IMG/VR virus record: IMGVR_UViG_3300043399_000877
Span: 124,001 to 188,000 of that record
Length of the DNA stretch: 64,000 nucleotides
Strand: one strand, 5' to 3'
A program made the translations under genes and the position numbers. Positions 21,155-53,700 of this stretch are shown here, piece by piece. Position 1 is the stretch's first letter. Every line of letters starts with the position of its first letter. The notes under the pieces were generated by a model. The model was not told the origin of the DNA, ran no database searches, and saw nothing but the letters and a program-made list of their open reading frames with translations.

Positions 21155-21170
21155 GTCGCCCTCCGTTGCA

Positions 21171-21189
21171 AGTATTTATTATAAATACT
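21171..21189. promoter_or_regulatory. Palindromic bidirectional late promoter
   Basis: AGTATTTAT-T-ATAAATACT gives TATAAATA on + and AATAAATA on -, between divergent gp13 and gp14. Confidence 0.75.
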
Positions 21190-21191
21190 GT

Positions 21192-22328: not shown

Positions 22329-22339
22329 GGATTAACACT

Positions 22340-24016: not shown

Positions 24017-24024
24017 GTATTTTT

Positions 24025-24459
24025 ATGAAAAAGATAATATGCAGTGGTGCCTTATTTTATGCACTAGATACTAACCGTTTTTTATTTTTACATAGGTCAC
24101 GAGGAAAACGTGCTGACCTTTGGGGCTTAGTGGGTGGAACCAACGAAGAAAGTGAAACTCCCTGGGATGGCTTGTGCCGAGAAATAACTGAAGAAATTGG
24201 TTCAATTCCTAAAATTAAAAAAACAATACCATTAGAAACATTTGTAAGTAATGACGACCATTTTAGTTTCCATACATATTTGTGCATAGTTGATAATGAG
24301 TTTTTACCAAAACTAAACGAAGAGCATGATGGGTATTGTTGGGTTACTTTTGGAAAGTGGCCCAAACCATTACATTCGGGCCTACAAAATACACTGAAAA
24401 GTCGTACTAATATTAAAAAATTAGAAACTGTAATTAAATTAATAAATTTAATTATCTAA
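24025..24459 (+). CDS. NUDIX hydrolase
   Basis: WGLVGGTNEESETPWDGLCREITEEIG Nudix box; LNEEHDGYCW. Confidence 0.9.
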   Translation: MKKIICSGALFYALDTNRFLFLHRSRGKRADLWGLVGGTNEESETPWDGLCREITEEIGSIPKIKKTIPLETFVSNDDHFSFHTYLCIVDNEFLPKLNEEHDGYCWVTFGKWPKPLHSGLQNTLKSRTNIKKLETVIKLINLII

Positions 24460-28440: not shown

Positions 28441-28468
28441 ATATCAACCTATAAAAGCTAATATATTT

Positions 28469-28497
28469 AAATGGCAGGGGATTATTCCCCGCCATTT
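28469..28497 (-). terminator. Bulged hairpin at the fibre 1 stop codon
   Basis: AAATGGC-A-GGGGA / TCCCC-GCCATTT; a late-type TTAAATA motif overlaps its end. Confidence 0.5.
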
Positions 28498-31400
28498 ATG
28501 GTTTTGCGAATTTGTTCCAGTTGTGCAGTCAGTGAGTTGATGGTAATCTGTTGTTCTTTTATGGCTTCAATCAACAGTGGTACCAATCTTTCATACTTGA
28601 TGGTCAAGTAATTCTCACCACTCTTGCTATAAAGATTTCCTTGGGAATCTTCTTTATGATCGAATGGTGCAGGTGCAACCGCTTCGGGCAACACTGCTTG
28701 TACTTCCTGTGCCAGCAATCCAACTTCAACTTTATCTGGATCTACAGCTAACCCAAGCTCAGTTGCTTCAGATTTCCAATTATAGTAAACTCCGTTGATT
28801 TTAGAAAGTTTTTCAACAGCATTGGAAACAACTTGTACATTTTCCTTCAATCTTGCATCCGAGCTGTATGCAGTTATTTCGCCCGCTGCGGTAATTGCAC
28901 CACCAAAAGTTACAGATCCACCGAGTCCGTTAATAATTAGGGTATTAGTGGCACCGTTGTTTCTGGCCATTATTTCATTAGGATCAATACAAACGTTGGC
29001 GGCAGTACTGGGACCTACTTGGAAACCGTGCAACGTGCTAGTAAGATTTACGTCTGCTGTAGCATTGCATCTTAGCCTAGTTATAGTTAGACCGCCAATA
29101 CCAGACAAATTTCCAACTTCAGTGGTACCAGCATACCAAGAAAATTGGCCTGCGCTTGTAGGAACCGAATTCCAAAGAGTATCAGTAGCTATACCTATTG
29201 CATAATCAACCGCTGCTGCACCAACACCCGGATAAAGTACAAGTTTAGTACCCGCACTTCGTGTTGTAAATGCCGGTATAGCTACACCGTTTGTATTCCA
29301 GTCAATTCTATTACCAGTTGTACCGTTTAGATAAATTTGGCCGTTATTGTTGACGGCATCCCATGCATTTGTAGATATAATTTGTGCGCTAAATGTTTTG
29401 TCTGCACTAAACGTCTGCACTGCTGCAAGTGTAGCTATTGTACTAGTCGCATCCGGTAATGTATAAGTTCTAGCCGCAGTCGGTCCAGCAAATGTTACAA
29501 ATTGGTTACCTAGCAGCTCAGTCTTAACGTTTGCAAGCGTCTTTGGTCTGACGAAACCATCTGAACCAGTTTCAACAAAGTAATGTGTTGCAGCGGTCGC
29601 TGTATCTCCAGATCCCGACAAGTTGATGAATGTTGGGTAGAAATATCCACCATAGTTAAGACGTGTCGTGCCGGTCGGCGTCGTGGTACTCGTATCAAAC
29701 TGGCCAGATGTTGCTACAGATCTTATCACAGCCATAGTATTTGGTGCTGCGGTTGTAATATCCGGCACTATAATTGTTGTGTCTGCAGTTGGGGCATTGT
29801 TTAATTCAGTGTAAAAAGTTCCGGCAGAATTATACATTCTGAAATTACCACCGGAAGTAAATACTGCTGTCAATGTCGGTTGAGCACTGGTAGCAGCGGT
29901 CCAAATTTGAAGATCACTACCACCTGCTGTACTTGCGCCCACACCACGCACAAGAGCCAGGTCACCGGATGACTGTGTACTAGCGTCTCTGCTTGCAAAA
30001 ACCACAGCACCAAGTTCAGTACCAGCATTCACTGTAGTACTGTTAAACTCTAACCTTAAACGTGCACCAATAGAACCATTAGCAGACGCCACGTATATAT
30101 CAGTTCCTTGAATAGTATTGACTGGAACTGTTGCGTTGGTAAGTGCAGCACCCATTTTAACTGTACCAGCAACTGTCTGCGCACCGGTTGTAGCGTTCGC
30201 ATACGAAACAGATGTAGTAGAGCATGCGGTAACTGTAAATGTACCATTATAACCGGTTGGTGTGACACCGGCAACAATAATCTGAGACCCGACTTCAAAT
30301 GGTGCTGCGGCTTGTGCTGCAAATGTCAGTGTTGCCGTTGTACCTGTGCCGCTTGCTCCGGTTGTCGCGATAGTAGTTGCCAAAGTTGGCACGGTAAGAA
30401 CGTCACCTGCTGTATATCTGTGACCGCCCCAGGTTAAAGTTACGCCAGTTACTACACCAAGAGCAACCGTTACAGTCGCCAGCGAATAAGAACCTGTTCC
30501 ACCCGACATTATCACGTTCGTGTGTGTGCCGTTCATGTAACCGGTACCACCGGAAGTTATGGCTGCCAATGTTAAAATAGGGCCGGTTACAGCAGATATA
30601 TCTGCACCAACAGCAAGGTTTCCGGGGACAATGGCGCTGGGTGAAAGTAACTTTGTGCTACCACCGTCAGCATCACCAATACTAACGTTAGTTGTTGACC
30701 CTGCCGCGCCGCCGGTGCCGATGTTAACTGTTTTGGTAAATCCGGATGCTGTAGCACCAGTCGCCAAGTTAAGAGTTTGAGAGGTTGTAGCTGCTCTACC
30801 AATTGTTATAGCACCGGTTCCGGACGTTCCGCCAATGTCTATTGTGCCGGAAGTTTGACCTGTTCCGATACTTATTGCTGCTGTTGTGTTATCTGTGAAC
30901 AAAGATGCAGCAGCATTGGTTGCGTTTACTGAAGTTATACCAGTCAAGGCAAGCGCCGCGCTGCCACGGTTGATGGTGACAGATGTTGTACCAATATTCA
31001 TTGTTTGGTTTACAGCAGCCACATCAGTGCCGATTGTAAGTCCTAATGAAGCTCTTGCTGTAGCACCAGTTTCACCAACCCAGTTTGTTCCATTACCTAC
31101 AATAATAGTATTGTCTGCTGGTGTTACTAGTGCAATGTCTGCAAGTCCCGCGTCATATGCTTGAACGTTGGTGCCAATTACGAGGCCAAGAGTCGTGCGT
31201 TGTGCAGCAGCGTCTGCATCATCCAAGATTGCTCGACCAGCAGCAGTCAAAGTAGTCACTGCGTATGTATCAGCCGCAGTCGTATAAATCATACGGTCGG
31301 CAGCAGTAGTCAAACCAGCTATGGACTGAAGACCTGCGTCATATGCTTGAACGTCTACACCAATAGTACCGGTATCTAGAACGCGGGACCAAGTCATTGA

Positions 31401-34400
31401 GGTGGTACCTAAAGTGTCAGTACCTTTAAAGTCAGTATCGAAGGTCTTACCTCCGTTTGCGGTGCCTTGGTCAACTGCAACCGCCGCTGCCGCTAACTCT
31501 GATGCAATGTTAGCATCATTCGCCCTAGTCCAAGCACCAGCCGCCACAACGTAAATTCCGTTTTCAGCAGCAGCAGTTTGGTTCTTTACAAGAACTCTAT
31601 CACCTGCTACAACGGCCACACCGTCAATAGTTTGAGGCGCTGATAGTGTAATATTAGCAGTTGTTGCGGCCTTGACGCTACGTTTGACCCATGCGTCTGG
31701 GAGATTTTCAAGAGTTAAGGTCTGCCAGCTTGGTGCGCTCGCGCCTGCCGAAACAAATGCCTGGCCAGCAGTACCAGCAGCAGTTACCGCAGTTGCCCCA
31801 GCACCAGTTTGATATGGAACACCCCCAGCAACACCGCCTGCTATGTTAGTGGCGGTTGTTGCAGTAGTAGCATTACCAGAGAACGTAGTTGCTGTTAATG
31901 TACCGGTAGAAGGCACATATGATAGTGCCGTAGCAGTTGCCCTAACTCGTGCAGTTTGGTTGCTACCAGCAGCAGCAACAAATACTGGATAATGTGTTGT
32001 GGCAGAAGTGTCTTCAGTAGCATTTATGGTTGTTGATGGTCCAGCAGTACCTTGGATACCTTGGCTACCAGTAAAACCAACGGATCCTTGTGATCCTTGA
32101 ATGCCCTGGCTACCGGTAAACCCTCGGCTACCGGTAAATCCTATGGGCCCTTGTTGACCCTGTATGCCTTGAACGCCCTGACTTCCGGTAAATCCGATCG
32201 GTCCTTGGTTTCCTTGAACACCTTGAACTCCTTGGCTACCGGTAAACCCGATCGGCCCCTGCTGGCCTTGAACGCCTTGAACGCCTTGGCTACCAGTAAA
32301 TCCTCGGCTACCAGTAAATCCAATCGGTCCTTGTTGTCCCTGGACGCCCTGCACACCTTGGCTACCGGTAAATCCTATAGGTCCTTGTTGTCCCTGGATG
32401 CCTTGAATGCCCTGACTACCAGTAAATCCAATGGGTCCCTGCTGGCCCTGTATGCCTTGAACGCCCTGACGCCCTTGTACACCTTGGCTTCCGGTAAATC
32501 CAATAGATCCATCAGAACCCTGTACACCTTGAATTCCCTGTGTGCCTTGAATGCCTTGACTTCCAGTAAATCCGATTGGCCCCTGCTGGCCCTGTATGCC
32601 TTGAACGCCTTGGACGCCTTGACGACCCTGAATACCTTGACTTCCAGTAAATCCAATGGGTCCCTGCTGACCCTGTATGCCTTGAACGCCTTGAATCCCC
32701 TGACTTCCAGTATATCCGATTGGACCATCAAATCCTTGTATACCCTGAACTCCTTGGACTCCCTGACTTCCGGTAAACCCAGTTGTACCAGTTATACCTT
32801 GACGACCTTGAACGCCTTGAACTCCCTGACTTCCGGTGAATCCAACGGGCCCCTGCTGGCCCTGTATGCCTTGAACGCCTTGGACGCCTTGACTTCCAGT
32901 ATATCCGATTGGACCATCAAATCCTTGTATACCCTGCACGCCTTGAACGCCTTGACTTCCAGTAAACCCAGTTGTACCAGTTATACCTTGACGACCTTGA
33001 ACGCCTTGAACTCCCTGACTTCCGGTGAATCCAACGGGCCCCTGCTGGCCCTGTATGCCTTGAACGCCTTGGACGCCTTGACTTCCTTGAACGCCTTGGA
33101 CACCTTGGCTACCAGTAAATCCTATGGGTCCTTGGTTTCCTTGAATGCCTTGTGTTCCTTGAACTCCCTGACTACCGGTAAATCCAATCGGTCCTTGTTG
33201 TCCCTGAACGCCTTGAACGCCCTGGCTACCGGTAAACCCAATGGGTCCTTGAGATCCTTGAATCCCCTGTGTGCCCTGGATGCCTTGACTTCCGGTAAAT
33301 CCGATTGGGCCTTGTTGACCCTGTATGCCTTGAACGCCCTGACGTCCTTGGACACCTTGGCTACCTGTAAACCCAATAGATCCATCAGAACCCTGTACAC
33401 CTTGAATTCCCTGAACGCCTTGGATACCTTGACTACCAGTAAATCCTATGGGCCCTTGTTGTCCCTGTATTCCCTGGCGCCCTTGAACACCTTGGACGCC
33501 TTGAACACCTTGGCTTCCGGTAAATCCTATTGGTCCGTCAGAACCCTGTATGCCCTGTACACCTTGAACTCCCTGGCTACCAGTAAACCCAATCGGTCCT
33601 TGTTGACCTTGGACGCCTTGTATGCCCTGTGCGCCCTGTACACCTTGGCTTCCGGTAAATCCGATCGGTCCTTGGTTTCCTTGAACTCCTTGTATGCCCT
33701 GACTACCAGTGAATCCAACGGGACCTTGAGATCCTTGTATGCCCTGACGGCCCTGTATGCCCTGAATTCCTTGGCTACCAGTAAATCCGATGGATCCGTC
33801 AGAACCCTGTACACCCTGGACCCCTTGGCTACCTTGACTGCCGGTAAATCCGACGGATCCCTGAGATCCTTGTATACCTTGAACTCCCTGTGTGCCTTGA
33901 ACGCCTTGGCTTCCTGTGAATCCGATTGGACCATCAAATCCTTGAATACCTTGACGCCCTTGGACACCTTGACTACCAGTAAATCCAACGGGCCCTTGTT
34001 GTCCCTGTACACCCTGAACTCCTTGAACTCCCTGACTACCGGTAAATCCAACGGGTCCTTGTTGTCCCTGGATACCTTGTGTTCCTTGAACTCCTTGACT
34101 ACCGGTAAATCCGATCGGTCCTTGGTTTCCTTGAACGCCTTGTGTTCCTTGAACTCCCTGACTACCGGTAAATCCAATCGGGCCCTGCTGGCCCTGAATG
34201 CCCTGCACGCCTTGAACGCCTTGACTTCCAGTAAACCCAATCGGTCCTTGCTGTCCCTGTATGCCCTGTGTACCCTGACTTCCGGTAAACCCGATCGGGC
34301 CCTGTTGGCCCTGAACTCCCTGACTACCAGTAAATCCGATCGGTCCTTGGTCGCCTTGAATTCCCTGGCGACCTTGAATACCCTGAACTCCCTGGCTACC

Positions 34401-37385
34401 AGTAAATCCGATCGGCCCTTGAGGCCCTTGAACGCCTTGTATTCCCTGACTACCGGTAAATCCGATCGGTCCTTGTTGACCTTGAACTCCTTGTGTTCCT
34501 TGTACACCCTGAACTCCTTGAACTCCCTGACTACCGGTAAATCCGATCGGCCCTTGAGGCCCTTGAACGCCTTGTATTCCCTGACTACCGGTAAATCCGA
34601 TCGGTCCTTGGTTTCCTTGAACACCTTGTGTTCCTTGTACACCTTGAATTCCTTGACTGCCAGTAAATCCAATCGGTCCCTGCTGACCCTGAATGCCTTG
34701 AGTGCCCTGGGTTCCTTGACTACCAGTAAATCCAATCGGTCCCTGCTGACCCTGAATGCCTTGAGTGCCCTGGGTTCCTTGACTACCAGTAAATCCAATG
34801 GGACCTTGTTGACCTTGAATGCCCTGGACTCCTTGGCTTCCAGTGAAACCTGTTATACCTTGCGCGCCCTGAATTCCTTGTGTGCCTTGGATGCCTTGAC
34901 TACCAGTAAAGCCTGTTGGGCCAATTTCACCCTGAATACCTTGTGTTCCCTGACTTCCTTGACGTCCTTGAATTCCCTGACTGCCAGTAAAACCAATCAG
35001 GCCTTGTTCGCCCTGGATGCCCTGAACACCCTGACTACCGGTAAATCCGATGGGTCCTTGTTCGCCTTGGACACCTTGCGTACCCTGAATGCCTTGACTA
35101 CCGGTAAATCCGATGGGTCCTTGTTCGCCTTGGACACCTTGCGTACCCTGAATGCCTTGACTACCGGTAAATCCGATGGGTCCTTGTTCGCCTTGAATTC
35201 CTTGTAGTCCTTGACGTCCTTGAACACCTTGACTTCCAGTAAAACCAATCGGGCCCTGGTTGCCCTGTATGCCCTGAACTCCTTGGCTACCAGTAAATCC
35301 GATCGGGCCCTGGTTGCCCTGTATGCCCTGGCGACCTTGAATTCCTTGACTACCAGTAAAACCTGTTAACCCTTGTTCTCCTTGAACACCCTGTGTACCC
35401 TGAACTCCTTGGACTCCCTGACTGCCAGTAAACCCGATGGGTCCTTGCTCGCCTTGAATTCCTTGTAGTCCTTGTGTGCCTTGGCTACCGGTAAACCCGA
35501 TGGGTCCTTGAGATCCTTGAACTCCCTGTATGCCTTGAACTCCCTGGCTACCGGTAAATCCAATGGGTCCTTGAGCTCCCTGAACACCTTGAATTCCTTG
35601 TGTGCCCTGAGATCCTTGTAATCCATAAGGACTACCTACCCATTGACCACTTGAATTTATAACAGTTCCAATATCTTGAATACTATACCCACTCGTTACA
35701 ATATTGGCAGTATTGTCGATAGAAAATGTTGTTCCAGTTAAATCTATCCCGGCGCCTGCGCTATAAATCTGAGCAGAACTAATTTGAACAAAATTGATTG
35801 GTGTTGTTCCAAACGATATTGTTCCAGCAGTGGTCATTACATATAGTTCGCCGGCACCGGTTGCACCTTCTTTGACGAAGAATGCATCACCAGCACCCAA
35901 AGAGTCCGGGTCACTAGGTGCATAGGTATTTGCATCAAGCGATCTAACCAATATCCAATTTGTTGATCCCGACCCAACATTCGAAACTGTGTAAATTCCG
36001 TTGTGTGCAGCATTTGTTTGATTGTAAACAAGCACTCTGTCATTTAGGCTCAACGTAACACCGTCGATTACCAATGCAGTTTGTGTGCCAGAATTGGTAA
36101 GTGTTGCACCTACTCCGTCAGTTCCATTGTCGTAAGTTGCAGACAGCGCAGTAGGTGCTTCTACTCTTACGGCTATGTGATAATGTATAGCTGCTGAAGC
36201 AATTGTATCAACATATTGTTTTGTTGCTGCATGCATCGCAGTTGTTGGGTCGTTTGCAAGAGTCAAACGTCCGGCGGTCATAGCAGTGTCGGTATCACTT
36301 CTTAAAAACTGTGCAGAACTCAGTCCTTGAAGTGTTTGAGCGTCACCCGCCGTTGAACCCTGTATACCCTGGACACCTTGAACACCTTGACTACCAGTAA
36401 AACCCGTTAATCCTTGTTCGCCTTGAACGCCCTGACTTCCTTGGCGGCCTTGGATACCTTGTAATCCCTGTAGACCTTGAACGCCTTGGACGCCTTGACT
36501 ACCAGTATACCCCCTTGCACCTAAGTTTCCGTCTATACCCTGAATTCCTTGAACACCCTGAATTCCTTGAATACCCTGGGCGCCGTGGCTACCAGTGTAA
36601 CCGCGTTCACCCTGTGGACCAACTATTTGTCCAGCATTGTCCCAGGTGGCGCCGGTCCAAATATAAAGATTTCCTTCAGATTGAACAATGTATGCGTCGC
36701 CGATGTCACCAGTATAGCTTGATGGATACCCGGGAAGATCGGTTACTAGGCTTACGCTGCCCTTTAAAACAATACTAGTACCCTGTGGGCCTTGGCTACC
36801 AGTAAATCCGGTATCACCCTTGGAACCAGTAAATCCGGTATCACCCTTGGAACCTGTGAATCCTGACGACCCAGTATACCCTCTTGGACCGATATTTGAA
36901 AAGAATTTCCAAGTAGACCCGTCATATATAAAATTAACATTTGCTCTACCAGTGTCTAAATCAAAAATTTGAGCAGAATTTTCAATAGTTTCACCAGAAC
37001 CTGCGTCTACTGATAGGTTATTTATTGACCAGTCGCCACCGTCTGCTATTGAAACAAACTGACCGACAACCGGTGAACTGGGAAGTGTGACGGTAAATGC
37101 AAATACAGTGGTATCGGCAATGATAAACTCACCACTTGTGGCAGCGTAATTATTTGTTACTTTTGTCCAATTTATAATGGGTTCACCGACCCATTCACCA
37201 CTGGAATTTATTACTGTACCATAATTGTTTATTTTTAATGATACTGCACTTAGGTTTCCACCTACTTGAATTATTTGGCTAGCCAGTGCTTGTAACAAAA
37301 CTTCTGACGAATCTGAAGAATTTACAAAATTAATATTTTCAGTTTGTAGTCCATTTTTGACTACGAATCGTTTATCATTTGCCAT
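28482..37385 (-). CDS. Giant collagen-like tail fibre (fibre 1) with C-terminal intramolecular chaperone (peptidase S74)
   Basis: 2967 aa; Gly-X-Y region 35624-32034; two DRVLVxNQ..NGIY tail-fibre domains flank it; C-terminal GEITAYSSDARLKENV...YERLVPLLIEAIKEQQ. Confidence 0.9.
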   Translation of the reverse strand: MANDKRFVVKNGLQTENINFVNSSDSSEVLLQALASQIIQVGGNLSAVSLKINNYGTVINSSGEWVGEPIINWTKVTNNYAATSGEFIIADTTVFAFTVTLPSSPVVGQFVSIADGGDWSINNLSVDAGSGETIENSAQIFDLDTGRANVNFIYDGSTWKFFSNIGPRGYTGSSGFTGSKGDTGFTGSKGDTGFTGSQGPQGTSIVLKGSVSLVTDLPGYPSSYTGDIGDAYIVQSEGNLYIWTGATWDNAGQIVGPQGERGYTGSHGAQGIQGIQGVQGIQGIDGNLGARGYTGSQGVQGVQGLQGLQGIQGRQGSQGVQGEQGLTGFTGSQGVQGVQGIQGSTAGDAQTLQGLSSAQFLRSDTDTAMTAGRLTLANDPTTAMHAATKQYVDTIASAAIHYHIAVRVEAPTALSATYDNGTDGVGATLTNSGTQTALVIDGVTLSLNDRVLVYNQTNAAHNGIYTVSNVGSGSTNWILVRSLDANTYAPSDPDSLGAGDAFFVKEGATGAGELYVMTTAGTISFGTTPINFVQISSAQIYSAGAGIDLTGTTFSIDNTANIVTSGYSIQDIGTVINSSGQWVGSPYGLQGSQGTQGIQGVQGAQGPIGFTGSQGVQGIQGVQGSQGPIGFTGSQGTQGLQGIQGEQGPIGFTGSQGVQGVQGTQGVQGEQGLTGFTGSQGIQGRQGIQGNQGPIGFTGSQGVQGIQGNQGPIGFTGSQGVQGRQGLQGIQGEQGPIGFTGSQGIQGTQGVQGEQGPIGFTGSQGIQGTQGVQGEQGPIGFTGSQGVQGIQGEQGLIGFTGSQGIQGRQGSQGTQGIQGEIGPTGFTGSQGIQGTQGIQGAQGITGFTGSQGVQGIQGQQGPIGFTGSQGTQGTQGIQGQQGPIGFTGSQGTQGTQGIQGQQGPIGFTGSQGIQGVQGTQGVQGNQGPIGFTGSQGIQGVQGPQGPIGFTGSQGVQGVQGVQGTQGVQGQQGPIGFTGSQGIQGVQGPQGPIGFTGSQGVQGIQGRQGIQGDQGPIGFTGSQGVQGQQGPIGFTGSQGTQGIQGQQGPIGFTGSQGVQGVQGIQGQQGPIGFTGSQGVQGTQGVQGNQGPIGFTGSQGVQGTQGIQGQQGPVGFTGSQGVQGVQGVQGQQGPVGFTGSQGVQGRQGIQGFDGPIGFTGSQGVQGTQGVQGIQGSQGSVGFTGSQGSQGVQGVQGSDGSIGFTGSQGIQGIQGRQGIQGSQGPVGFTGSQGIQGVQGNQGPIGFTGSQGVQGAQGIQGVQGQQGPIGFTGSQGVQGVQGIQGSDGPIGFTGSQGVQGVQGVQGRQGIQGQQGPIGFTGSQGIQGVQGIQGVQGSDGSIGFTGSQGVQGRQGVQGIQGQQGPIGFTGSQGIQGTQGIQGSQGPIGFTGSQGVQGVQGQQGPIGFTGSQGVQGTQGIQGNQGPIGFTGSQGVQGVQGSQGVQGVQGIQGQQGPVGFTGSQGVQGVQGRQGITGTTGFTGSQGVQGVQGIQGFDGPIGYTGSQGVQGVQGIQGQQGPVGFTGSQGVQGVQGRQGITGTTGFTGSQGVQGVQGIQGFDGPIGYTGSQGIQGVQGIQGQQGPIGFTGSQGIQGRQGVQGVQGIQGQQGPIGFTGSQGIQGTQGIQGVQGSDGSIGFTGSQGVQGRQGVQGIQGQQGPIGFTGSQGIQGIQGQQGPIGFTGSQGVQGVQGQQGPIGFTGSRGFTGSQGVQGVQGQQGPIGFTGSQGVQGVQGNQGPIGFTGSQGVQGIQGQQGPIGFTGSRGFTGSQGIQGSQGSVGFTGSQGIQGTAGPSTTINATEDTSATTHYPVFVAAAGSNQTARVRATATALSYVPSTGTLTATTFSGNATTATTATNIAGGVAGGVPYQTGAGATAVTAAGTAGQAFVSAGASAPSWQTLTLENLPDAWVKRSVKAATTANITLSAPQTIDGVAVVAGDRVLVKNQTAAAENGIYVVAAGAWTRANDANIASELAAAAVAVDQGTANGGKTFDTDFKGTDTLGTTSMTWSRVLDTGTIGVDVQAYDAGLQSIAGLTTAADRMIYTTAADTYAVTTLTAAGRAILDDADAAAQRTTLGLVIGTNVQAYDAGLADIALVTPADNTIIVGNGTNWVGETGATARASLGLTIGTDVAAVNQTMNIGTTSVTINRGSAALALTGITSVNATNAAASLFTDNTTAAISIGTGQTSGTIDIGGTSGTGAITIGRAATTSQTLNLATGATASGFTKTVNIGTGGAAGSTTNVSIGDADGGSTKLLSPSAIVPGNLAVGADISAVTGPILTLAAITSGGTGYMNGTHTNVIMSGGTGSYSLATVTVALGVVTGVTLTWGGHRYTAGDVLTVPTLATTIATTGASGTGTTATLTFAAQAAAPFEVGSQIIVAGVTPTGYNGTFTVTACSTTSVSYANATTGAQTVAGTVKMGAALTNATVPVNTIQGTDIYVASANGSIGARLRLEFNSTTVNAGTELGAVVFASRDASTQSSGDLALVRGVGASTAGGSDLQIWTAATSAQPTLTAVFTSGGNFRMYNSAGTFYTELNNAPTADTTIIVPDITTAAPNTMAVIRSVATSGQFDTSTTTPTGTTRLNYGGYFYPTFINLSGSGDTATAATHYFVETGSDGFVRPKTLANVKTELLGNQFVTFAGPTAARTYTLPDATSTIATLAAVQTFSADKTFSAQIISTNAWDAVNNNGQIYLNGTTGNRIDWNTNGVAIPAFTTRSAGTKLVLYPGVGAAAVDYAIGIATDTLWNSVPTSAGQFSWYAGTTEVGNLSGIGGLTITRLRCNATADVNLTSTLHGFQVGPSTAANVCIDPNEIMARNNGATNTLIINGLGGSVTFGGAITAAGEITAYSSDARLKENVQVVSNAVEKLSKINGVYYNWKSEATELGLAVDPDKVEVGLLAQEVQAVLPEAVAPAPFDHKEDSQGNLYSKSGENYLTIKYERLVPLLIEAIKEQQITINSLTAQLEQIRKTINGGE
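32034..35624 (-). repeat. Coding tandem repeat (Gly-X-Y)n, about 399 triplets built from GPIGFTGSQ and G[VIT]Q units
   Basis: 3591 nt = 1197 aa, exactly divisible by 9; no register break seen on reading the translation. Confidence 0.85.
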
Positions 37386-40366: not shown

Positions 40367-42919
40367 TTAAAAACTCCTTGCGATTGCAGCACGAGTTGCA
40401 ATCCTGTTAACTGATTGTTCAAAAGGCGGGCCAGTAAGCTCACCGGTGTCAGCATCTATTTTCATACCACCGATAAAGAGAGCCGATCCCTGATCGTCTT
40501 GTCCGCTAGCAATAACTATCCCGTTGTTTAATTCTAGAATGCTTTCTTCGATAGTTGCAAAATTTCTTGCAGGCGGTATTTTGGTAAGTGCGACACCTGC
40601 CATGATGCCGGTCCAAGTGTGTCCTATTGCAGTAATAGTTGACGGCTCTGAAACCAATGTTGGATCTAATACTGTTTGTGTTAACGCGGAAACCAAAGCA
40701 GTTACAATAGTATCAGCTGCACTACCAACACCGGCTAATGCGTTTACTTGGTCTCGTAAATATTCCCAACTATAAATAAAAGCCCCTAAAAGACTTTGAT
40801 TTTCTAAATTAAGATAACGTAACACTGACCTTGCTATAGCGCGACTGTTTGCGGTTATTGTTGTAAAACTAGTCCTAAATTCAGCATCCGGCCAACTTGT
40901 GCTGGGTGAAACTTTAATCGGAGGTTCACCGTCAGTAGCTATTGTGTTTATAATATTATCCATTCTAGCTTGCGCAAACGCTGCTGCCGCACTACTACCA
41001 GCAGTACCGCTGGTATCTTGAGACCCGGTATTTCCACTACTTTTTGTTATAGATATTCCTTGAAGAATGTCACCTAGTATATTTTTTAGTCTTTGAAATG
41101 CAGCAATTGTTGGGAATTTTTCATCTGTACCAAATTGCCCTGTGGTTCCCACATAATAAGCCATAGCAGCATTATATGTTTCCAAATTGCCACCATAAGT
41201 AAGATCGTATCTTAATGCGTCAATAATGAATCCAACGTCTCTGCGACATGCTGCACTGTTATAAGTAAAACTACTACTAAACGGGCTTATGTTTCCGGCC
41301 ACTTGCACCGCAATCCATGCATCTATTTCATCTTGAATAAATGTCTTATTTGCAAGCAACAGCCGTCTAGCATTAAAATAGCCAGTATCGTATCCTGTGG
41401 GATCAGTTAAAACAAATGCGTTTGCGTTTGCTTCTCCGTTGGTTATAATGTCTATAATTTCATCAAAAAGCGCATTTGCGCGAGTAAGCGAGGTACCACT
41501 TAAATAGCTACCAAATACTGATTTTTGCTCAGCTAGTGCTAATAGTGTGTTTGCTTTTTGGTTTGTTAACACTTCGCTAGCATTTGCACGATAGTATGCT
41601 AATGCACTTTTTATACTTCTAAAATTGCTGTTGAATAGCAGATCATAAACTACTGCTTCATTGATGAGCAATGTATCCCTAAAACATTTGTCATAGTCGT
41701 AATTGGCTGCTGTAAAAGTTCTGTTTCCCTGTGTATCAAAAAATCCCCGTGCAAAATCCAACATGGGTTTTTCATTTGCAGTGCTTAGTGTCCAACTTAA
41801 TGCTTGTAGGAACAATCCTGCATCGCGTTCGGTAGTTGCTTCATAGTCAGCTGGCCAATTGGTAGTAAAACCTTGGGAGTCTAGTTCAGATATCAAATTA
41901 GAAATTATAGTAGTTTTTGCTGCATCAATAGCGGTGCTGGCCGCAGATTGTGCTGTAAGAGTAATGGCCACTTCTGTTGGGTTTACTAGATTTCGGGTAC
42001 CACTAGAAACCATTGTATAGTCGCCAAACTGTGTTGAACAACTTGATAATATTATTTGTCCACCGCCTAATGCATAAAAATGTCTATGACACCACATGCT
42101 TACAGCATTAACAGCATTGATTAGTGCGCCATTTTTAGCACAATAACCAATTCCGTTATGTGTCACAGGCGTTGCGCCCCAGGTCATTATGTTGGGGAAT
42201 ATACTATCAGGATCGAGAACACTTGCATCGGCCAGTACTACTCCAGCGCCGCGGCCTACCAATGGGTTAGCGTTTTCACGATCTAATGGTGGGGCTATGC
42301 TGGTCCAGTATGGTGGTGTTCTAACTACAATTTTGTGAACGTATGGTACTCGGGTAATTCTGGCGCCGGGACGAAAACAAATCGCGAATCCTTCAGTTGG
42401 ATTATCCATGTCATCAAGGCGCCAACCTTCAAAAACAGGTCCTTCAACAAAACAACCAGAACCCAATCTAAAAACATTGCGTTCTTCGTATCCAACTTCT
42501 GGTCTTATAAAAACTGTCCGGTGTGCTGCTCTTATTACTGTGTTATCTGGAACATCCAAATGACCTTGTGTTATGTATACGCCCGGACCTATATCAATAA
42601 GAGTTAATGCTTCTCTTGCAACTGCGACTTCAAGAGCTTTTTCTATAGTTGCAAATGCGCTGCTCCAAGTATCACCACTGTTGCGATCGTTACCGGCTTT
42701 TTGAACATATAGAGTGTTCTCAATAGGAACACTTCCGGATATTTCAACAATATCTTCGTAAGTTACATTTTGCTGTAATGCTTGATCAAAATATTCTTGA
42801 TATTGTTTTAGGAACATTTTGCCATCATAGGTATTGATGGCTATTTCACCCAAATCGAGTTGTTGAATGGTAGGCACCTTGTCAGGTACCGAACTGCGAC
42901 GTAATTTAATCGTTGACAT
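40367..42919 (-). CDS. Large putative virion protein: Mtd-N-like start, beta-helix-like domain, phycobiliprotein-like helical repeats
   Basis: MSTIKLRRS..VP...LGEIAINTYDGK; LYVQKAGNDRNSG...AFATIEKAL...GPGVY; KCFRD and ACRRD repeats; C-terminus paralogous to 58215-63128. Confidence 0.8.
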   Translation of the reverse strand: MSTIKLRRSSVPDKVPTIQQLDLGEIAINTYDGKMFLKQYQEYFDQALQQNVTYEDIVEISGSVPIENTLYVQKAGNDRNSGDTWSSAFATIEKALEVAVAREALTLIDIGPGVYITQGHLDVPDNTVIRAAHRTVFIRPEVGYEERNVFRLGSGCFVEGPVFEGWRLDDMDNPTEGFAICFRPGARITRVPYVHKIVVRTPPYWTSIAPPLDRENANPLVGRGAGVVLADASVLDPDSIFPNIMTWGATPVTHNGIGYCAKNGALINAVNAVSMWCHRHFYALGGGQIILSSCSTQFGDYTMVSSGTRNLVNPTEVAITLTAQSAASTAIDAAKTTIISNLISELDSQGFTTNWPADYEATTERDAGLFLQALSWTLSTANEKPMLDFARGFFDTQGNRTFTAANYDYDKCFRDTLLINEAVVYDLLFNSNFRSIKSALAYYRANASEVLTNQKANTLLALAEQKSVFGSYLSGTSLTRANALFDEIIDIITNGEANANAFVLTDPTGYDTGYFNARRLLLANKTFIQDEIDAWIAVQVAGNISPFSSSFTYNSAACRRDVGFIIDALRYDLTYGGNLETYNAAMAYYVGTTGQFGTDEKFPTIAAFQRLKNILGDILQGISITKSSGNTGSQDTSGTAGSSAAAAFAQARMDNIINTIATDGEPPIKVSPSTSWPDAEFRTSFTTITANSRAIARSVLRYLNLENQSLLGAFIYSWEYLRDQVNALAGVGSAADTIVTALVSALTQTVLDPTLVSEPSTITAIGHTWTGIMAGVALTKIPPARNFATIEESILELNNGIVIASGQDDQGSALFIGGMKIDADTGELTGPPFEQSVNRIATRAAIARSF

Positions 42920-42956
42920 ATGCAACCCTTCTAATTTTGCTGACTATATAGTCAAG

Positions 42957-43001
42957 AAAAAGCCCTAAAGCAAATATATATGAATATTTATCTTTAGGGC
43001 T
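42957..43001 (-). terminator. 10-bp terminator hairpin with a late promoter in its 21-nt loop
   Basis: AGCCCTAAAG (42961-42970) / CTTTAGGGCT (42992-43001), U-tract after it on -, ATAAATA at 42991-42985. Confidence 0.65.
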
Positions 43002-47741: not shown

Positions 47742-50700
47742 TTATTTTCCTTCTAGCCGATCTACCTTGGCTTTGAGTTCTTTAACAGCTTCAATAAGCA
47801 ACGCAGTTAGTTTTTCGTATTGTACTGTTAAATATTCTTCACCAGTTTTGCTAGTTCCAGTTTCTGGATCTATGTCAAACGGTGCATTTCTTACAGCTTC
47901 CGGTAGTACTTTGAATACTTCCTGTGCTATAACACCGACATCTCGATCTTTTCTTGGAACAAAGTCAAGTGTTTCGGCTTTTTTATGGTCCCAATCAAAA
48001 GTTACACCGCGCAGTGATGTTATTTTATCAAGAGCATTGTCAATGGTAGTTATATTGGTTTTAAGTCTTTCATCCGAACTATAAGCAGTAATTTCACCAA
48101 CTGCACTAAAGTTTCCGGTTGCACCAAACGTTGCTGCAATAGTACCAGCAGTTGTTACGTTAAACGAACCAACAGCACTTGAGAATATACCGGTATCAAC
48201 ATCACGGACTGCGAGTGCTGGTGCCGCCGCTGTTCCGGATCCCTGCAAGTATGTTCTACCAGAAGCAATCCACAATGCCCAGGAATTGGTTATAGTTGTA
48301 GGCAGGACAGCTACAGGTGCTGCATCGATTTTAACGTTTGCAGCAGTGGTTATTGTCATAGTATTAGTGCTAGTAAATGTTGGAGTACGGAATGTAGCGT
48401 GATTTCGTTGGGAAACTGTGCCACCGGCAGCCGTAGTAGTATCAGTAAACGTGCTGTTTGCCACGTTTAGTCTGACACCAGTTGCTGTATTAGTTACACC
48501 ACTGATATTTCCAGTCATATTAACTTGATCAGTAAATGCCACAGTACCGTCAGTTGCCACAGTCATAGGAATTAGCGTACCGGCACTGTCTACTTTAAAT
48601 ACTCTGAGCGTGTTAGTTGGGTCAACATCTATGTTCCAGGTGTTGTTAGTTTGTCCAGTTATTGTGTCCGCTGCACTATTTCCGTAACCAAGAACCAGTT
48701 GTCCACCGTCAGATGATGCAGCTGACCCACCACGTACAACCAGTTGTCCAGTGCCTATTATAACACCAGCCGCAAGTATAGTATTTGCGCCCGGCGGGGT
48801 TGTACCTACGCCCAAGCCGTCCGAACTACCAAACCCAGCGGTTCCACCAACTTGTAAACCACCGCTGAAGAAGTTGGAATTTTCATTTGAAACGTATATA
48901 CCCCAGCGAGACTTCCATTCCCCCTCATACACACCATAATACAAATACCCTTCCCCAGCGTTACCGGGTGCAACTATGTCGCTATCAAGTCTTGTATAAT
49001 CGCCAAATGTAGTTGACAATGTTCCACCGTCAACTTCTATCCAATTATAATTTATATATGACGTTCCAACACTTCCTGCGTCAACATTTATCTTATTGTA
49101 TGTTGAATACAGCGATGTAGTAGTTGATCCGCTTCTTGTATTTTGGCCTATGTTTTGCGATCCAATTACACTTGCTATTGTTCCGGTACCACGGTTAGTT
49201 GCCTCGTTATATCCGCCAATAAAGGTTGTACCAGCTACTGCAACGTCATTTGCGTTACCGGCAAATATTCTGTTGTATCCAGAAAATCCGCTAAGTGTAT
49301 AACTTGTAATTCCGTCGGCACCTAATAGACTTCCTTCAGTTATTGTCACATCGTTTACGATACCGTAATGAATACGGCTTGCCGAAAGAACACCGTCAGT
49401 TGTACTAACTGATGTTACCAAAGATCTTAATGATGTTGTATTAGATGATCCAGATATACTTGCATTTATAATATAATTTGTTGCCGGAAGACTATCTTTA
49501 AGACCAATGTTGCCAACTATATTTGTGTTTCCGTTTGCATCAAAGTATGCAGCCTGTGAACCACCAGTTGTTATCCCGAGTTGGTTAGTACCACTCAGAT
49601 ACATACCTGTAGAAGTATCACCTATAAAACTATATGACGGCGAGGCATTAGTCCCGCTAGATAGTCTTAATTGACCGCTTGTTGTGTTAAATCCAAGCTT
49701 TGTACTTGCCGCCAAGGCTGTTGAATCTACACCGGTGGCTGCAACAAATACTGGGAAACGTAGTCCACCGCTTGTCTCGTCAGTGGCCAATATTGTATCG
49801 CTTGGACCAGCCGTTCCGCCACTACCAGTGTATCCACGTACCCCTTGAATACCTTGACTTCCAGTGTAACCGCGGCTGCCGGTAAATCCAACCCCAGTTA
49901 TACCCTGTATACCTTGTGGACCCACAATGCCTTGAATACCTTGGCTTCCAGTGTAACCGCGGCTGCCGGTAAATCCAGCACCAGATGGTCCTTGGACCCC
50001 TTGGCTACCGGTAAATCCAGTATTTCCTTGATTTCCTTGAATTCCTTGACTACCGGTAAATCCACGACTTCCGGTGAATCCAACACCAGACGATCCTTGA
50101 ATGCCCTGGCTACCGGTAAATCCAGTATTTCCTTGAAATCCCTGAATGCCCTGACTACCAGTAAATCCACGACTTCCGGTAAATCCAGTATCACCAAGGC
50201 CGTCTGTACCTTTTATACCCTGGATACCTTGCATGCCCTGGCTACCGGTAAATCCACGACTTCCGGTAAATCCAGTGTCACCAAATCCGTTACTGCCTTG
50301 AGTACCCTGCGGTCCTTGGCGTCCTTGTATACCTTGACTTCCAGTATATCCACTGCTTCCGGTAAATCCAGTGTCACCAAATCCGTTACTGCCTTGGATA
50401 CCTTGAATACCTTGGCGTCCTTGTATACCTTGGATACCCTGACTTCCAGTAAATCCAGTTAAACCAGCACCATCTTGACCTCGTATACCTTGAATACCTT
50501 GGATACCTTGAATACCTTGGCTACCAGTAAATCCAGTTAAACCAGCACCATCTTGACCTCGTATACCTTGAATACCTTGGATGCCTTGAATACCTTGGCT
50601 ACCAGTAAATCCACGGGTTCCTGTGCCGCTTATACCCTGAATTCCTTGTAGACCTTGAATACCTTGGCTACCGGTAAATCCAGTTGAACCAACGCCATCC

Positions 50701-53700
50701 GGTCCTTGTATACCTTGACCGCCTTGAACGCCTTGTACACCTTGGCTTCCGGTAAATCCACGGATGCTTGCACCGCTTATACCTTGAATACCCTGAATAC
50801 CTTGACTTCCGGTAAATCCGGCACCACGAATACCTTGAATACCTTGAATACCTTGAATACCTTGTGGGCCTTTTATTTGGCCTACGTTATTCCATTGTGT
50901 TCCATCGTAAACCCAAAAATTACCTGTTGCGTCATCTATGACACCGTTTCCGGGTTCAGCTGGATTGCTTATGGTATTGAAATAATAATTCAAATACAGC
51001 GATGGTTGATTTGGTCCGCCTGCCGGGAATACTGCATTTACGTCAGCTGCTGATCCGATTATTAAAAGTGCTGGACCGTAGGTTCCTTGTAGACCTTGAA
51101 CGCCTTGGCTACCGGTAAATCCAGTAGACCCAACAATGCCTTGTATACCTTGACGACCTTGAATACCCTGAATTCCCTGGCTACCAGTAAATCCAGTTCC
51201 TCCAGATTGACCACTGATTCCTTGTAGACCTTGAACGCCTTGACTACCGGTAAATCCATTTTGACCTTGTTGGCCTTGAATACCTTGGCTACCGGTAAAT
51301 CCTCGGCTACCAACAACACCAACGCCATCGGTTCCTCGGATACCTTGAATGCCCTGGGCGCCTTGGCTACCAGTAAATCCAGTTCCTCCAGATTGACCAC
51401 TAATGCCCTGAACACCTTGAATTCCCTGGCTACCGGTAAATCCAATAGGTCCCTGTGAACCTTGAATACCCTGACTTCCGGTAAATCCTCTAGCACCAAC
51501 GGTACCATCTATACCTTGTATACCTTGCAGGCCCTGGTTGCCTTGTACACCTTGGCTACCGGTAAATCCTCGGCCACCAACAGTACCACTAATACCCTGA
51601 ATTCCCTGGAGTCCAGTGGATCCCTGGATACCTTGGCTACCGGTAAATCCTCGGCCACCAACAGTACCACTAATACCCTGAATTCCCTGGAGTCCTTGAA
51701 CGCCTTGGATACCTTGGCTACCAGTAAATCCTCTAGCACCAACAGTACCGTCTATACCTTGTATACCTTGAAGTCCAGTAGATCCCTGGATACCTTGGCT
51801 ACCAGTAAATCCTCTAGCACCAACGGTACCGTCTATACCTTGTATACCTTGCAGGCCCTGAACGCCCTGACTTCCGGTAAATCCTCTAGCACCAATGTTA
51901 CCATCTATACCCTGGATACCTTGAAGGCCCTGGACGCCTTGACTTCCGGTAAACCCACGAGCTCCAGTTAAACCTGTTTCACCCTGGGAACCTTGGACAC
52001 CTTGTCGCCCCTGGATACCTTGAATACCTTGGCTACCGGTAAATCCAGTAGTTCCATTTAATCCAGATATACCCTGAATACCCTGTATACCAATACTTCC
52101 AGTAAATCCGCGGCTACCAACAAAACCTGAATTACCAAGAGATCCTTGAATACCTTGGATACCCTGGCTACCGGTAAAACCAATTACCCCACGAATGCCT
52201 TGAATTCCCTGTGGTCCTTGGATACCCTGAATTCCCTGCGGTCCTTTTATTTGACCTACGTTGTTCCATATGCTGCCATCAAATACCCAAAGATCACCAG
52301 TAGACTGATCTATTACCCCGTTTCCAGTAACTCTGGATGGGAATGTGTCGTTTAAGAAATTATTGGGATTTCCGGTAATATTTACATTTTCAACAGAGCC
52401 TATTACAGTGAGTGATGGTCCGTATGTTCCCTGTACACCCTGTATACCTTGGGATCCTTGGATACCTTGAATGCCCTGACTTCCGGTATATCCAAAAGCA
52501 CCAGCACCACCTTGTATACCTTGAGTACCTTGACTTCCGGTAAAACCTATCGGTCCCTGGCTACCGGTGTATCCTAGGCCACCTATTGGACCACTTATAC
52601 CTTGGATACCTTGGATACCTTGGCTACCAGTATATCCGCGACTACCAACAAAACCAGTATTACCTATTTCACCAGTTAGACCCTGGACCCCTTGAATACC
52701 CTGACTACCGGTAAATCCTGTTAAACCACGAACACCTTGAATACCTTGACTACCGGTAAATCCAACGCTTCCGGTAAATCCGCGTATACCTTGGACACCC
52801 TGACTACCGGTAAATCCAACGCTACCTACGTAACCTAAATCTCCACGATCACCTTTGGTTCCTTGTGGACCTTGAATACCTTGCGCGCCGACAAATCCGC
52901 TAATACCCTGAACACCTTGGATACCTTGGATACCATCAACGCCTTGTATTCCTTGAATACCCTGTGGTCCTATGCTACCAGTATATCCACGACTACCCAC
53001 AAATCCGTCAATGCCCTGGAGTCCTTGCACCCCTTGGAATCCCATAGGTCCTTGAATACCCTGGGCACCTTGTAAACCTTGAACCCCCTGACTACCGGTA
53101 AAACCTGTAGATCCACTTATACCTTGTAAACCTTGTAGGCCTTGTGGTCCAATTGTTCCTTGAACTCCATCTTGACCTGCAAGACCTTGCTGACCGGTTG
53201 TTCCTTGAGCCCCAACAGTTCCCTGAAGACCGTTAGCACCTTGTAGACCCTGTTGTCCCACTGTGCCCTGAGCACCGGTTGTTCCTTGTGCGCCGTTGGC
53301 TCCTTGGACACCCCGGCTTCCGGTAAATCCAGTTATACCTGTAGTACCCTGAGCACCATTGGATCCTTGAATACCCTGTGGGCCTTGTGGTCCAACTATC
53401 TGACCCACGTTTTCCCATGAGCTTCCATTGTATACCCAAAAATCGCCAGTAGCAGAATCTATTACACCATTTCCAGCTACTGCTGCTGGAAAATAATAAT
53501 TAAGCAGGCCTTGTGGGTCGTTTGGTCCACCTGTCGGATAAACAGCATTAACATTGGCTACTGAACCTTCGATAGTTAACGCGGGTCCATAGGTACCTTG
53601 AAGACCTTGAGTACCTTGGCTGCCAGTATAACCCATACTACCAATGAATCCAGTTTGACCGACAATTCCTTGGGGTCCTTGAATGCCTTGAATGCCTTGC

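Follow-up and report, generated by a model that had tools for sequence, protein, structure and literature searches.

Phycobiliproteins (PBPs; Pfam PF00502), comprising phycocyanin, phycoerythrin, allophycocyanin and the ApcE bilin domain, and their relatives are known as light-harvesting antennae or as small soluble bacterial globins. The latter are represented by the bilin biosynthesis-associated globins (BBAGs), PBP paralogues outside photosynthesis that are found in genomes also carrying HO and FDBR genes, are clustered next to pre-PcyA and HO, in some cases carry C-x-R-D, self-attach bilins and have no known function (PMC10151467). In phages, HemO-PcyX and the cyanophage ho1, pebS, pcyA and cpeT "auxiliary metabolic genes" have been assigned to host light harvesting or their purpose has been called enigmatic, as for hemO and pcyX in hosts without phycobilisomes, and no phage-encoded acceptor protein has been named (PMC11480375, PMC10452541). 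T4-like cyanophages, for example S-PM2 with p091 of 3338 aa, also encode giant tail-fibre and structural proteins.

Here we describe a tail-fibre gene of a 382-kb marine phage (IMG/VR record IMGVR_UViG_3300043399_000877; the window analysed is the 64,000-nucleotide stretch at positions 124,001 to 188,000 of that record) whose stalk is built from remote PBP homologues that keep the PBP pigment-attachment motif. Like PBPs, the units have a globin-type core from helix A to helix H (PBP residues ~30-175), with C-x-R-D on helix E in the same alignment column. They differ from PBPs in lacking the N-terminal X-Y helix hairpin that makes the alpha-beta protomer, since structural and profile matches start at PBP residue 27-39; in being about 145 aa long against 162-177 aa; in being fused head to tail in one chain, with 2 to 37 per protein, inside virion fibre proteins rather than forming an alpha/beta pair of separate subunits; and in their own conserved residues (Y-D...G-G-N, Y-Y). 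There is no evidence of chromophore or light harvesting, and the carrier phage here is not a cyanophage; neither a covalently bound bilin nor assembly into (alpha-beta)3 discs was examined. With some BBAGs they share C-x-R-D, and the genome here also encodes HO and an FDBR; they are repeat domains of phage fibres, about 130 kb from HemO-PcyX, and were not placed in the BBAG tree. The giant cyanophage proteins contain the same units, nine in two ORFs in S-PM2 and four each in P-HM1 and P-HM2, and the window's protein is a short member of this family, with two full units and split flanking units. We found no prior report of such domains in phage fibres; their presence as the repeating stalk unit of phage tail fibres puts the family in a wholly new setting.

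Organization of the fibre gene and its repeats

The repeats described in the sequence-only reading are present in the window at the places it gave. YDYDKCFRDT... covers residues 409-434, with the Cys414 codon at 41686..41684, and YNSAACRRDV... covers residues 555-580, with the Cys560 codon at 41248..41246, 146 aa later. The half unit YEATTERDAGLFLQAL covers residues 361-376, its T365 lying 49 aa before Cys414, and the C-terminal pieces LLGAFIYSWEYLRDQVNAL and DTIVTALVSAL cover 712-730 and 738-748, respectively. The two repeats are far beyond chance, with repeat HMM E-values of 1e-46 and 1e-61, and the first paralogue, encoded at 58215..63128, has six C-x-R-D units at Cys706, 847, 987, 1121, 1261 and 1414. 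Two corrections are needed: the likely start is ATG 42919, with an AAGGG ribosome-binding site 6 nt upstream, giving 850 aa rather than 852, and the half unit aligns Thr, not Glu, with the Cys position. The features are collected below.

Features of the fibre gene and its paralogue (residues are in P0001 numbering, P0001 being the protein of this gene counted from TTG 42925; model positions are those of the repeat HMM)
Coordinates (strand)	Residues	Feature	Supporting observations
40367..42919 (-)		Tail-fibre gene, 850 aa from ATG 42919	PHROG tail-fibre families match; ribosome-binding site and ATG seen; homologues are 846-856 aa and begin MSTIKL
42956..43001 (-)		Terminator-like hairpin (AGCCCTAAAG...CTTTAGGGCT plus a T run) after the upstream gene, followed by TTGAC and an AAGGG ribosome-binding site	Read directly from the sequence; not tested further
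42365..42916 (-)	4-187	N-terminal fibre-attachment region	phrog_17885 tail fiber protein, E 2e-24; homologues carry Pfam Mtd_N; tblastn matches to cyanophage tail-fibre and gp7-like proteins over residues 1-320
41966..42739 (-)	~63-320	Beta-strand-rich region, probably a right-handed beta-helix	Strands in the model, but low pLDDT over 200-310; Foldseek hits to tailspikes and rhamnogalacturonan lyase; DUF1565 and pectate-lyase-like hits in relatives and in protein P0002
41738..41950 (-)	326-396	Half unit 0: helices A, B, E, F', T365-x-R367-D368, no Cys	Model positions 10-77, 13.7 bits; T365, R367 and D368 invariant in 35 homologues
41384..41725 (-)	401-514	Unit 1: E to H helices, C414-F-R416-D417; lacks its own A/B helices	Model positions 33-148, 144 bits; Cys414 kept in 20 of 32 homologues, R and D in 31 of 32
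40883..41404 (-)	508-681	Unit 2: complete PBP-like globin domain, C560-R-R562-D563	Model positions 2-148, 193 bits; single-unit model pLDDT 94.9, PBPs the top matches; Cys560 kept in 32 of 32 homologues
40799..40906 (-)	674-709	Orphan A/B helix pair	Model positions 1-36, 10.6 bits; same piece present in 4- and 6-unit homologues
40664..40783 (-)	715-754	Orphan G/H-like helix pair	Model positions 91-130, only 0.3 bits here, 8.2 bits in protein P0003; predicted to pack on residues 316-483
40370..40663 (-)	755-852	C-terminal domain, highly conserved, fold not resolved	Many invariant columns; pLDDT below 50 in the monomer model; by eye, P0002 ends in a similar GHT/SHT...DDQG/DQRG tail
58215..63128 (-)		Paralogous fibre gene, 1637 aa, with six plain tandem PBP-like units at 58578..61124	All six units carry C-x-R-D; weak pectate-lyase-like hit upstream of the units

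The assignment to a tail fibre or tailspike rests on N-terminal homology and gene neighbourhood. The protein matches phrog_17885, phrog_5342, phrog_4527 and phrog_9851, neighbouring genes match tail-fibre and fibre-assembly PHROGs, and cultured-phage homologues are annotated as tail fibre or virion structural proteins. Presence in the virion and trimeric assembly were not examined, no proteome or structure being available for this uncultured phage. A megablast search of the gene against cultured phages found nothing.

The sequence-only reading proposed that complete domains had been inserted into a loop of an ancestral domain, giving an extensible stalk, and named as a refutation a model in which the half repeats fail to pack together. 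The repeat HMM shows complementary pieces, and in a complex prediction made to address this point the N piece (316-515) and the C piece (674-760) are predicted to pack together, with an ipSAE of 0.81 against a best control of 0.01. The nested arrangement is therefore supported by models only, these models do not settle which helix completes which domain, and the picture is more tangled than a simple Russian doll because unit 1 lacks its A/B helices and a spare A/B pair follows unit 2. Extensibility is borne out, as homologues with 2, 4 and 6 units keep the same flanks and other proteins reach 36-37 units. A crude classification of units did not bear out strict alternation of two subtypes, since the patterns AB, AABB, ABAB and ABAABB all occur, although in the P0001 family extra units do come as CYRD plus CRRD pairs.

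Relationship to phycobiliproteins and conservation of the C-x-R-D motif

The phycobiliprotein likeness put forward in the sequence-only reading is supported by three independent lines, namely profile-profile homology, predicted fold and Pfam hits in homologues. Comparison by hhalign of 70 diverse units with 143 cyanobacterial CpcA/CpcB-type proteins gave 90% probability and E 1.7e-6 over 114 columns, unit positions 11-138 aligning with PBP positions 39-165 and C-x-R-D falling on PBP Cys84. A unit profile searched against PDB sequences returned 7 hits, 6 of them phycocyanin alpha, aligned on the same Cys84. PF00502 scored 27.9-41.5 bits, against Pfam's gathering cut-off of 22.2, in six close homologues (P0061, P0007, P0011, P0015, P0105 and P0109). 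The protein studied here does not reach this cut-off: P0001 has no Pfam hit at E up to 1 and only weak sialidase matches in a direct PDB sequence search, P0002 scores 12.1 bits, and only 4 of 70 single units reach E 0.01 or better.

The full-length structure, whose prediction had been proposed as a check, was modelled, and all of its top 50 VIA matches are PBPs (Z 13-15, rmsd 2.4-2.8 A), with model residues 512-663 on PBP residues 33-177. The top 50 Foldseek matches of the single-unit model are likewise all PBPs, with TM 0.5-0.68. An unbiased search of 48,161 PDB chains with this model ranks PBPs and ApcE first (Z 13.2-10.5), these being the top 8 chains, followed by sensor globins, photocobilins and RsbR, and then haemoglobins. 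The PBP-type globin fold is assigned on predicted models only.

Conservation of Cys, Arg and Asp among homologous repeats had also been set in advance as a criterion, with loss of the Cys counting against the proposal. Selection on the motif is real, but Arg and Asp are stricter than Cys. At the position of Cys414, homologues that lack Cys have Ser (8), Thr (3) or Ile (1). Over all 412 unique units Asp is kept in 99%, Arg in 95% and Cys in 76%, whereas in the 361 units that have the C-terminal half Cys is kept in 83%, against ~95% for Arg and ~99% for Asp. In 70 diverse full units with a mean identity of 32%, Asp is invariant and Cys and Arg are at 90% or more. A repeat phylogeny with ApcA/B, CpcA/B and ApcE, likewise suggested, was not built, as it would not be reliable at about 15-20% identity. 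An exhaustive search found 1578 protein clusters with these units. A third PBP-like protein, of 325 aa, has no counterpart in the other carrier phages.

Bilin genes in phages that carry the units

The possibility that the window derives from a cyanomyovirus was rejected, as there is no psbA and the capsid is 70-76% identical to GAP32, CBB, PA5oct and Phosso-type jumbo phages; the phage is a GAP32-like jumbo myovirus. Its genome encodes adjacent HemO and an FDBR, the latter a PcyX (215 bits to PDB 5owg against 46 bits to PcyA), but no CpeT or CpeS lyase. All five near-complete psbA-less phages with these units carry HemO plus a PcyX-like FDBR and fall in two lineages with only 37% capsid identity, and no CpeT was found in the other psbA-less carriers either. 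This absence is compatible with lyase-independent attachment of a bilin but does not show it, attachment itself not having been assayed. In cultured cyanophages the units co-occur with cpeT (10 of 11 against 0 of 7; Fisher p 2.5e-4 by record and 0.003 by genus), and in six of them cpeT lies 0.4-2 kb upstream, on the same strand, of a unit-bearing fibre gene.

The idea that HemO-PcyX always goes with the units was rejected. Pelagiphage Mosig has HemO and PcyX but no units, so that the pigment genes have another use at least there, and P-SSM2 and P-SSM5 have HO and an FDBR without units. Phage B23, conversely, has units without cpeT. Whether the units resemble BBAGs in being encoded together with HO and an FDBR is left undecided by these observations, given the shared genome, the ~130-kb separation, the five of five carriers with both genes and the counterexample of Mosig. 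The counts are small and partly non-independent by descent. Of 42 IMG/VR contigs tested from a scan with a degenerate DNA pattern, 41 were 10-49% fragments and uninformative on co-occurrence with HemO, and a capsid-based control set was dropped because it too was almost all short fragments.

Possible bilin binding by the fibre and alternative readings

We interpret the product as a virion tail-fibre or tailspike-like protein with, from the N to the C terminus, a fibre-attachment region, a beta-strand (probably beta-helix) region, a helical stalk of globin domains homologous to PBPs and a conserved C-terminal domain. In this protein the first and last units are partial and are predicted to fold back on each other, so that extra unit pairs in relatives lengthen a loop-like excursion. 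The units keep the PBP chromophore triad, with Cys for the thioether link and Arg and Asp for the propionate and pyrrole nitrogens, and we infer, with moderate confidence, that they bind a linear tetrapyrrole while the fibre is assembled in the infected cell. In this phage that would be phycoerythrobilin made by its own HemO-PcyX pair, attached either spontaneously, as BBAGs with C-x-R-D attach bilins without lyases (PMC10151467), or through an unknown lyase, and the released virion would then carry pigmented fibres. Our analysis demonstrates the repeats, their homology and fold likeness to PBPs, the conservation of the motif, the fibre gene context and the genomic co-occurrence with bilin genes, whereas bilin binding is an inference from sequence, models and gene co-occurrence, no chromophore having been observed, and what a pigment would do is speculation. 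T-type lyases, moreover, are known for Cys153/155, not Cys84 (PMC10452541). This reading would provide a concrete phage-encoded candidate acceptor, a structural protein of the virion, for hemO and pcyX in phages of non-cyanobacterial hosts and for cyanophage cpeT.

We can not rule out that the PBP-type globin fold was recruited only as a rigid, stackable building block for long fibres, the Arg-Asp pair and a small residue at the Cys position serving folding or inter-domain packing without any bilin, although we consider this possibility less likely. The replacement of Cys in 12 of 32 homologues at unit 1 and by an invariant Thr in the half unit, while Arg and Asp are retained, could reflect such a structural role, as could the huge arrays typical of structural repeats and the location of T365, D368 and C414 at the predicted interface between pieces in the complex model, and Mosig, P-SSM2 and P-SSM5 show that the bilin genes do not need the units. 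However, the Arg and Asp of C-x-R-D in PBPs are described as hydrogen-bonding partners of the chromophore (PMC10151467), and retention of the full triad at 83-99% across units only about 32% identical is hard to explain by packing alone. Nor does this reading give a reason why all five psbA-less carriers keep HemO and PcyX, or why cpeT tracks, and often abuts, the fibre gene in cyanophages.

It is unlikely that the domains instead bind haem, another tetrapyrrole or a host surface component, acting in receptor recognition or sensing unrelated to the bilin genes. Fibres are receptor-binding organelles, and the next structural neighbours after PBPs are haem-binding sensor globins (Z 10.4) and photocobilin globins (Z 9.5), but the conserved motif is the bilin triad aligned column for column with PBPs, and the units sit in the middle of the protein, between the beta-strand region and the conserved C-terminal domain, whereas a distal tip would be the usual place for receptor binding. 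Convergence of an unrelated helical repeat around a short motif is very unlikely. Single units rarely reach Pfam significance, Foldseek E-values are only 6e-3 to 6e-2 and helical bundles can give Z around 13 without any relationship, yet the profile-profile match covers the whole globin core, the structural ranking below PBPs and ApcE falls off through the globin clades in the order of the published tree (PMC10151467), and three independent methods align the same Cys.

As for function, the most attractive idea is light-dependent behaviour of the fibre during adsorption. In this view, which we regard as improbable on present evidence although it is not excluded, the units would be chromophorylated in the infected cell, using host bilins plus phage CpeT in cyanophages or phage HemO-PcyX in phages of hosts without phycobilisomes, and would act as a light sensor that gates adsorption. 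This would explain at once why phages carry cpeT and hemO-pcyX and why some cyanophages adsorb only in the light. Circumstantial support is thin and comes from few phages: P-SSM2, which carries no units, adsorbs in the dark, whereas S-PM2, P-HM1 and P-HM2, all of which carry the units, show light-dependent adsorption (PMC6628666, citing Jia 2010).

Organization of the fibre gene and its repeat units

The repeats lie in an open reading frame on the minus strand. Its ATG is preceded by a terminator-like hairpin, a TTGAC box and an AAGGG ribosome-binding site, and homologues begin with MSTIKL, so the gene most likely encodes 850 aa. The hairpin, which carries a T run, lies between the stop codon of the upstream structural gene (43013) and the fibre gene, which may therefore be its own transcription unit. 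The observation made in the sequence-only reading was confirmed, as every peptide it reported, namely two Cys-containing repeats 146 aa apart, a half unit 49 aa before the first Cys and a C-terminal half, is present at the position claimed. A motif scan of all six frames of the window found the same pattern in one other ORF only, which is the "first" paralogue of the sequence-only reading and encodes the protein P0002.

A repeat HMM was built from the units of the window and then from 380 units of homologues, and it dissects the protein into five pieces (see table). There are thus three A/B pairs, three E/F' hairpins and three G/H pairs, arranged so that the ends are complementary. Ahead of this stalk lie a fibre-attachment region and a beta-strand region, and behind it lies a very conserved C-terminal domain that the monomer model does not resolve. 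Homologues of 1150 and 1450 aa keep the same flanks and add two or four full units, as CYRD plus CRRD pairs, while P0002 has six plain tandem units and no half units.

Positions of the fibre gene, its repeat pieces and associated features (window coordinates unless another record is named; G000 is the phage's own genome; L numbers are sub-loci)
Feature	Position	Strand	Residues	Repeat-HMM positions	Content
ORF containing the repeats	40367..42925	-
Most likely gene	40367..42919	-			850 aa, ATG at 42919
Half unit			326-396	10-77	helices A, B, E, F', with T365-x-R-D
First Cys unit	Cys414 at 41686	-	401-514	33-148	E to H, with C414-x-R-D; no A/B
Second Cys unit	Cys560 at 41248	-	508-681	2-148	complete unit, with C560-x-R-D
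A/B piece			674-709	1-36	A/B only
G/H-like piece			715-754	91-130	weak match
Terminator-like hairpin	42956..43001	-
Paralogous ORF (P0002)	58215..63128	-			1637 aa, six units
Collagen-like ORF	28482..37385	-			2967 aa
Collagen-like ORF	47742..54077	-			2111 aa
Galactosyl-transferase-like ORF and ORF with a DNA-methyltransferase-like segment	54128..56748	-			between the collagen-like fibre gene and the paralogous fibre gene
HemO and PcyX-type reductase, outside the window	G000:C1:32951-34154 (L005:1492-2698)	-			adjacent genes
325-aa protein, outside the window	L001:1489-2466, inside the open frame G000:C1:264223-265224	+			one N-terminal unit
S-PM2 region with cpeT and fibre gene (L385)	S-PM2 161500-178000
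ACG-2014e region with cpeT and fibre gene (L396)	ACG-2014e 15500-33500				cpeT 18240-18764; fibre gene 19130-31357

Relationship of the units to phycobiliproteins and predicted packing of the ends

The units are phycobiliprotein (PBP)-like by three routes. In sequence-profile comparisons, six homologues exceed Pfam's curated cut-off for PF00502, scoring 27.9-41.5 bits against 22.2, and match profile positions 62/72-153, that is, from the Cys84 helix to the C-terminus. The finding's own protein, however, has no Pfam hit, and single units rarely reach significance against PF00502. A profile of 70 diverse units found phycocyanin alpha chains as 6 of its 7 PDB sequence hits, aligned exactly on K-C-x-R-D. 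Additionally, hhalign against 143 CpcA/CpcB-type proteins from cyanobacterial genomes gave 90% probability and an E-value of 1.7e-6 over 114 columns covering the whole globin core.

The second route is the predicted fold. The full-length structure prediction, which the sequence-only reading had proposed as a check, has pLDDT 85-96 over residues 320-760, and all of its top-50 VIA matches are PBPs (Z 13-15, rmsd 2.4-2.8 A, residues 512-663 on PBP residues 33-177), although the X-Y hairpin of true PBPs is absent. A single-unit model has pLDDT 94.9 and pTM 0.90, and its Foldseek top 50 are all PBPs. In an unbiased comparison with 48,161 chains, PBPs and the ApcE bilin domain take ranks 1-8 (Z 13.2-10.5), followed by sensor globins, photocobilins and RsbR, and then by haemoglobins. 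The third route is the motif, since C-x-R-D is the PBP chromophore-binding motif, in which Cys forms the covalent link and the other two residues hydrogen-bond to the chromophore (PMC10151467).

Loss of the Cys among homologues would have counted against the sequence-only reading, which inferred selection on this residue. Among 35 full-length homologues, T365, R367, D368 and D563 are invariant, and R562 and R416/D417 are near-invariant. Cys560 is kept in 32 of 32 aligned sequences, but Cys414 is kept in only 20 of 32, with Ser in 8, Thr in 3 and Ile in 1. Over 412 unique units, Asp is 99%, Arg 95% and Cys 76%; Cys rises to 83% in units that have the C-terminal half, whereas Thr dominates in truncated units. 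In 70 diverse full units, at a mean identity of 32%, Asp is invariant and Cys and Arg are at 90% or more. Selection on the site is therefore clear, but it is strongest on Arg-Asp.

The same reading proposed that complete domains are nested inside a split one, a proposal that would have failed had the half units not been predicted to pack together. We folded the N piece (316-515) with the C piece (674-760) as two chains, and ipSAE was 0.81, 0.81 and 0.79 in three runs, against 0.01 for the best of three controls. The mark of the method was reached by 58 of 80 solved complexes and 2 of 110 mismatched pairs, counts that hold only roughly here because our own alignment was used. This is a model and not a measurement, and contact pairs are not given; it does not distinguish whether G3/H3 completes unit 0 and A3/B3 completes unit 1 (the nested reading) or whether another pairing holds. 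There were about 200 contacts, with the C piece touching A0/B0, E0/F'0 (including T365 and D368), E1 (including C414) and G1/H1. The interpretation is thus supported, by modelling, in that the ends are predicted to pack together with complete units as an excursion between them.

Genomic context and distribution

The window is bases 124001-188000 of a 381,886-bp IMG/VR virus record rated complete. The major capsid protein is 70-76% identical to those of GAP32, CBB, PA5oct and Phosso-type jumbo myoviruses of proteobacteria, and there is no psbA, so the phage is probably not a cyanophage. The gene sits among tail-fibre and fibre-assembly genes and two giant collagen-like ORFs, which have 21-25% Gly and hundreds of G-X-Y triplet runs, flank the fibre genes and account for the local rise in G+C to 0.48-0.52. 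The genome also encodes adjacent HemO and an FDBR in the order Hsp20, ClpS, HemO, FDBR, upstream of an alpha/beta hydrolase. The FDBR is a PcyX, scoring 215 bits to PDB 5owg against 46 bits to PcyA, and PcyX is the enzyme that makes phycoerythrobilin (PMC11480375). This is the "pink pigment" cassette, here in a GAP32-like jumbo phage of 382 kb. No CpeT or CpeS lyase was found in the genome.

An exhaustive HMMER search found 1578 cluster representatives at E 0.001 or better and 671 at 1e-30 or better, with up to 36-37 units in proteins of about 6000 aa. The typical architecture is Mtd_N, then DUF1565 or a pectate-lyase-like region, then the units. Among 50,697 cultured-phage records the units occur in 117, all of them cyanophages and 111 of them Synechococcus phages; S-PM2 has nine units in two giant ORFs, including p091 with five C-x-R-D sites. 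Several environmental IMG/VR fragments (L063/L222, L077/L254, L102/L233 and L121/L181) carry both a capsid gene 81-86% identical to that of this phage and a C-x-R-D unit within a few kb, as in this genome, and the jumbo lineage with PBP-like fibres therefore seems common in metagenomes.

Among phages without psbA, every near-complete genome with units has HemO plus a PcyX-like FDBR, namely G000 and four other phage genomes, G001 (85% complete), G007, G012 and G048. These form two lineages with only 37% capsid identity between them, and none has CpeT; fragments were uninformative. The converse fails, as pelagiphage Mosig has HemO and PcyX but no units. In a panel of 18 cultured phages, units and CpeT occur together in S-PM2, P-HM1, P-HM2, MED4-213, ACG-2014e, S-H9-1, S-WAM2, S-B64, S-CAM4 and S-CAM1, B23 has units without CpeT, no phage has CpeT without units, and P-SSM2, P-SSM5, S-CAM9, S-8S56, S-PRM1, S-SRM01 and Mosig have neither (Fisher p 2.5e-4 by record and 0.003 by genus). 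A review gives CpeT in 31 of 153 cyanophage genomes (PMC10452541). In six phages cpeT, a bilin-lyase-like gene, lies 0.4-2 kb upstream, on the same strand, of a unit-bearing giant fibre gene. In cultured Synechococcus phages such as S-PM2 and ACG-2014e, this is a giant "short tail fiber" gene inside the baseplate and fibre module. The S-PM2 RefSeq record also shows tRNA features drawn inside this coding sequence, which looks like a coordinate error in the record.

Possible bilin binding by the fibre units

Our analysis supports well that the protein is a fibre, that the units are PBP homologues and that the bilin triad is under selection, whereas bilin binding by the units is inferred from the triad, from the BBAG precedent of lyase-free attachment at C-x-R-D (PMC10151467) and from the co-occurrence patterns. 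We consider this inference somewhat more likely than not. The chief rival is a pigment-free structural module in which Arg-Asp has taken a packing role, and the variable Cys and the cases of Mosig and P-SSM2 keep that possibility alive. What a pigment on a fibre would do is an open question. One hint, suggestive only as it rests on three phages in two lineages against one, comes from adsorption behaviour, in that S-PM2, P-HM1 and P-HM2 adsorb only in the light (PMC6628666) and carry units, while P-SSM2 adsorbs in the dark and carries none.

Full-text searches found no description of PBP-like domains in phage fibres or virions, although the literature covered was incomplete and prior mention elsewhere cannot be excluded. 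The 2024 paper on phage hemO, pcyX and alaS calls the purpose of these genes enigmatic and only speculates about BBAGs or phytochromes. A six-frame scan of the genome found only one further unit, at the N-terminus of a 325-aa non-fibre protein (K-C-T-R-D; 28 bits to the repeat HMM, PF00502 E 0.066), with no counterpart in seven other phages searched. This unit is fused to an unknown C-terminal part of ~190 aa and encoded next to a radical-SAM gene, and the protein could be a soluble BBAG-like bilin binder or carrier.
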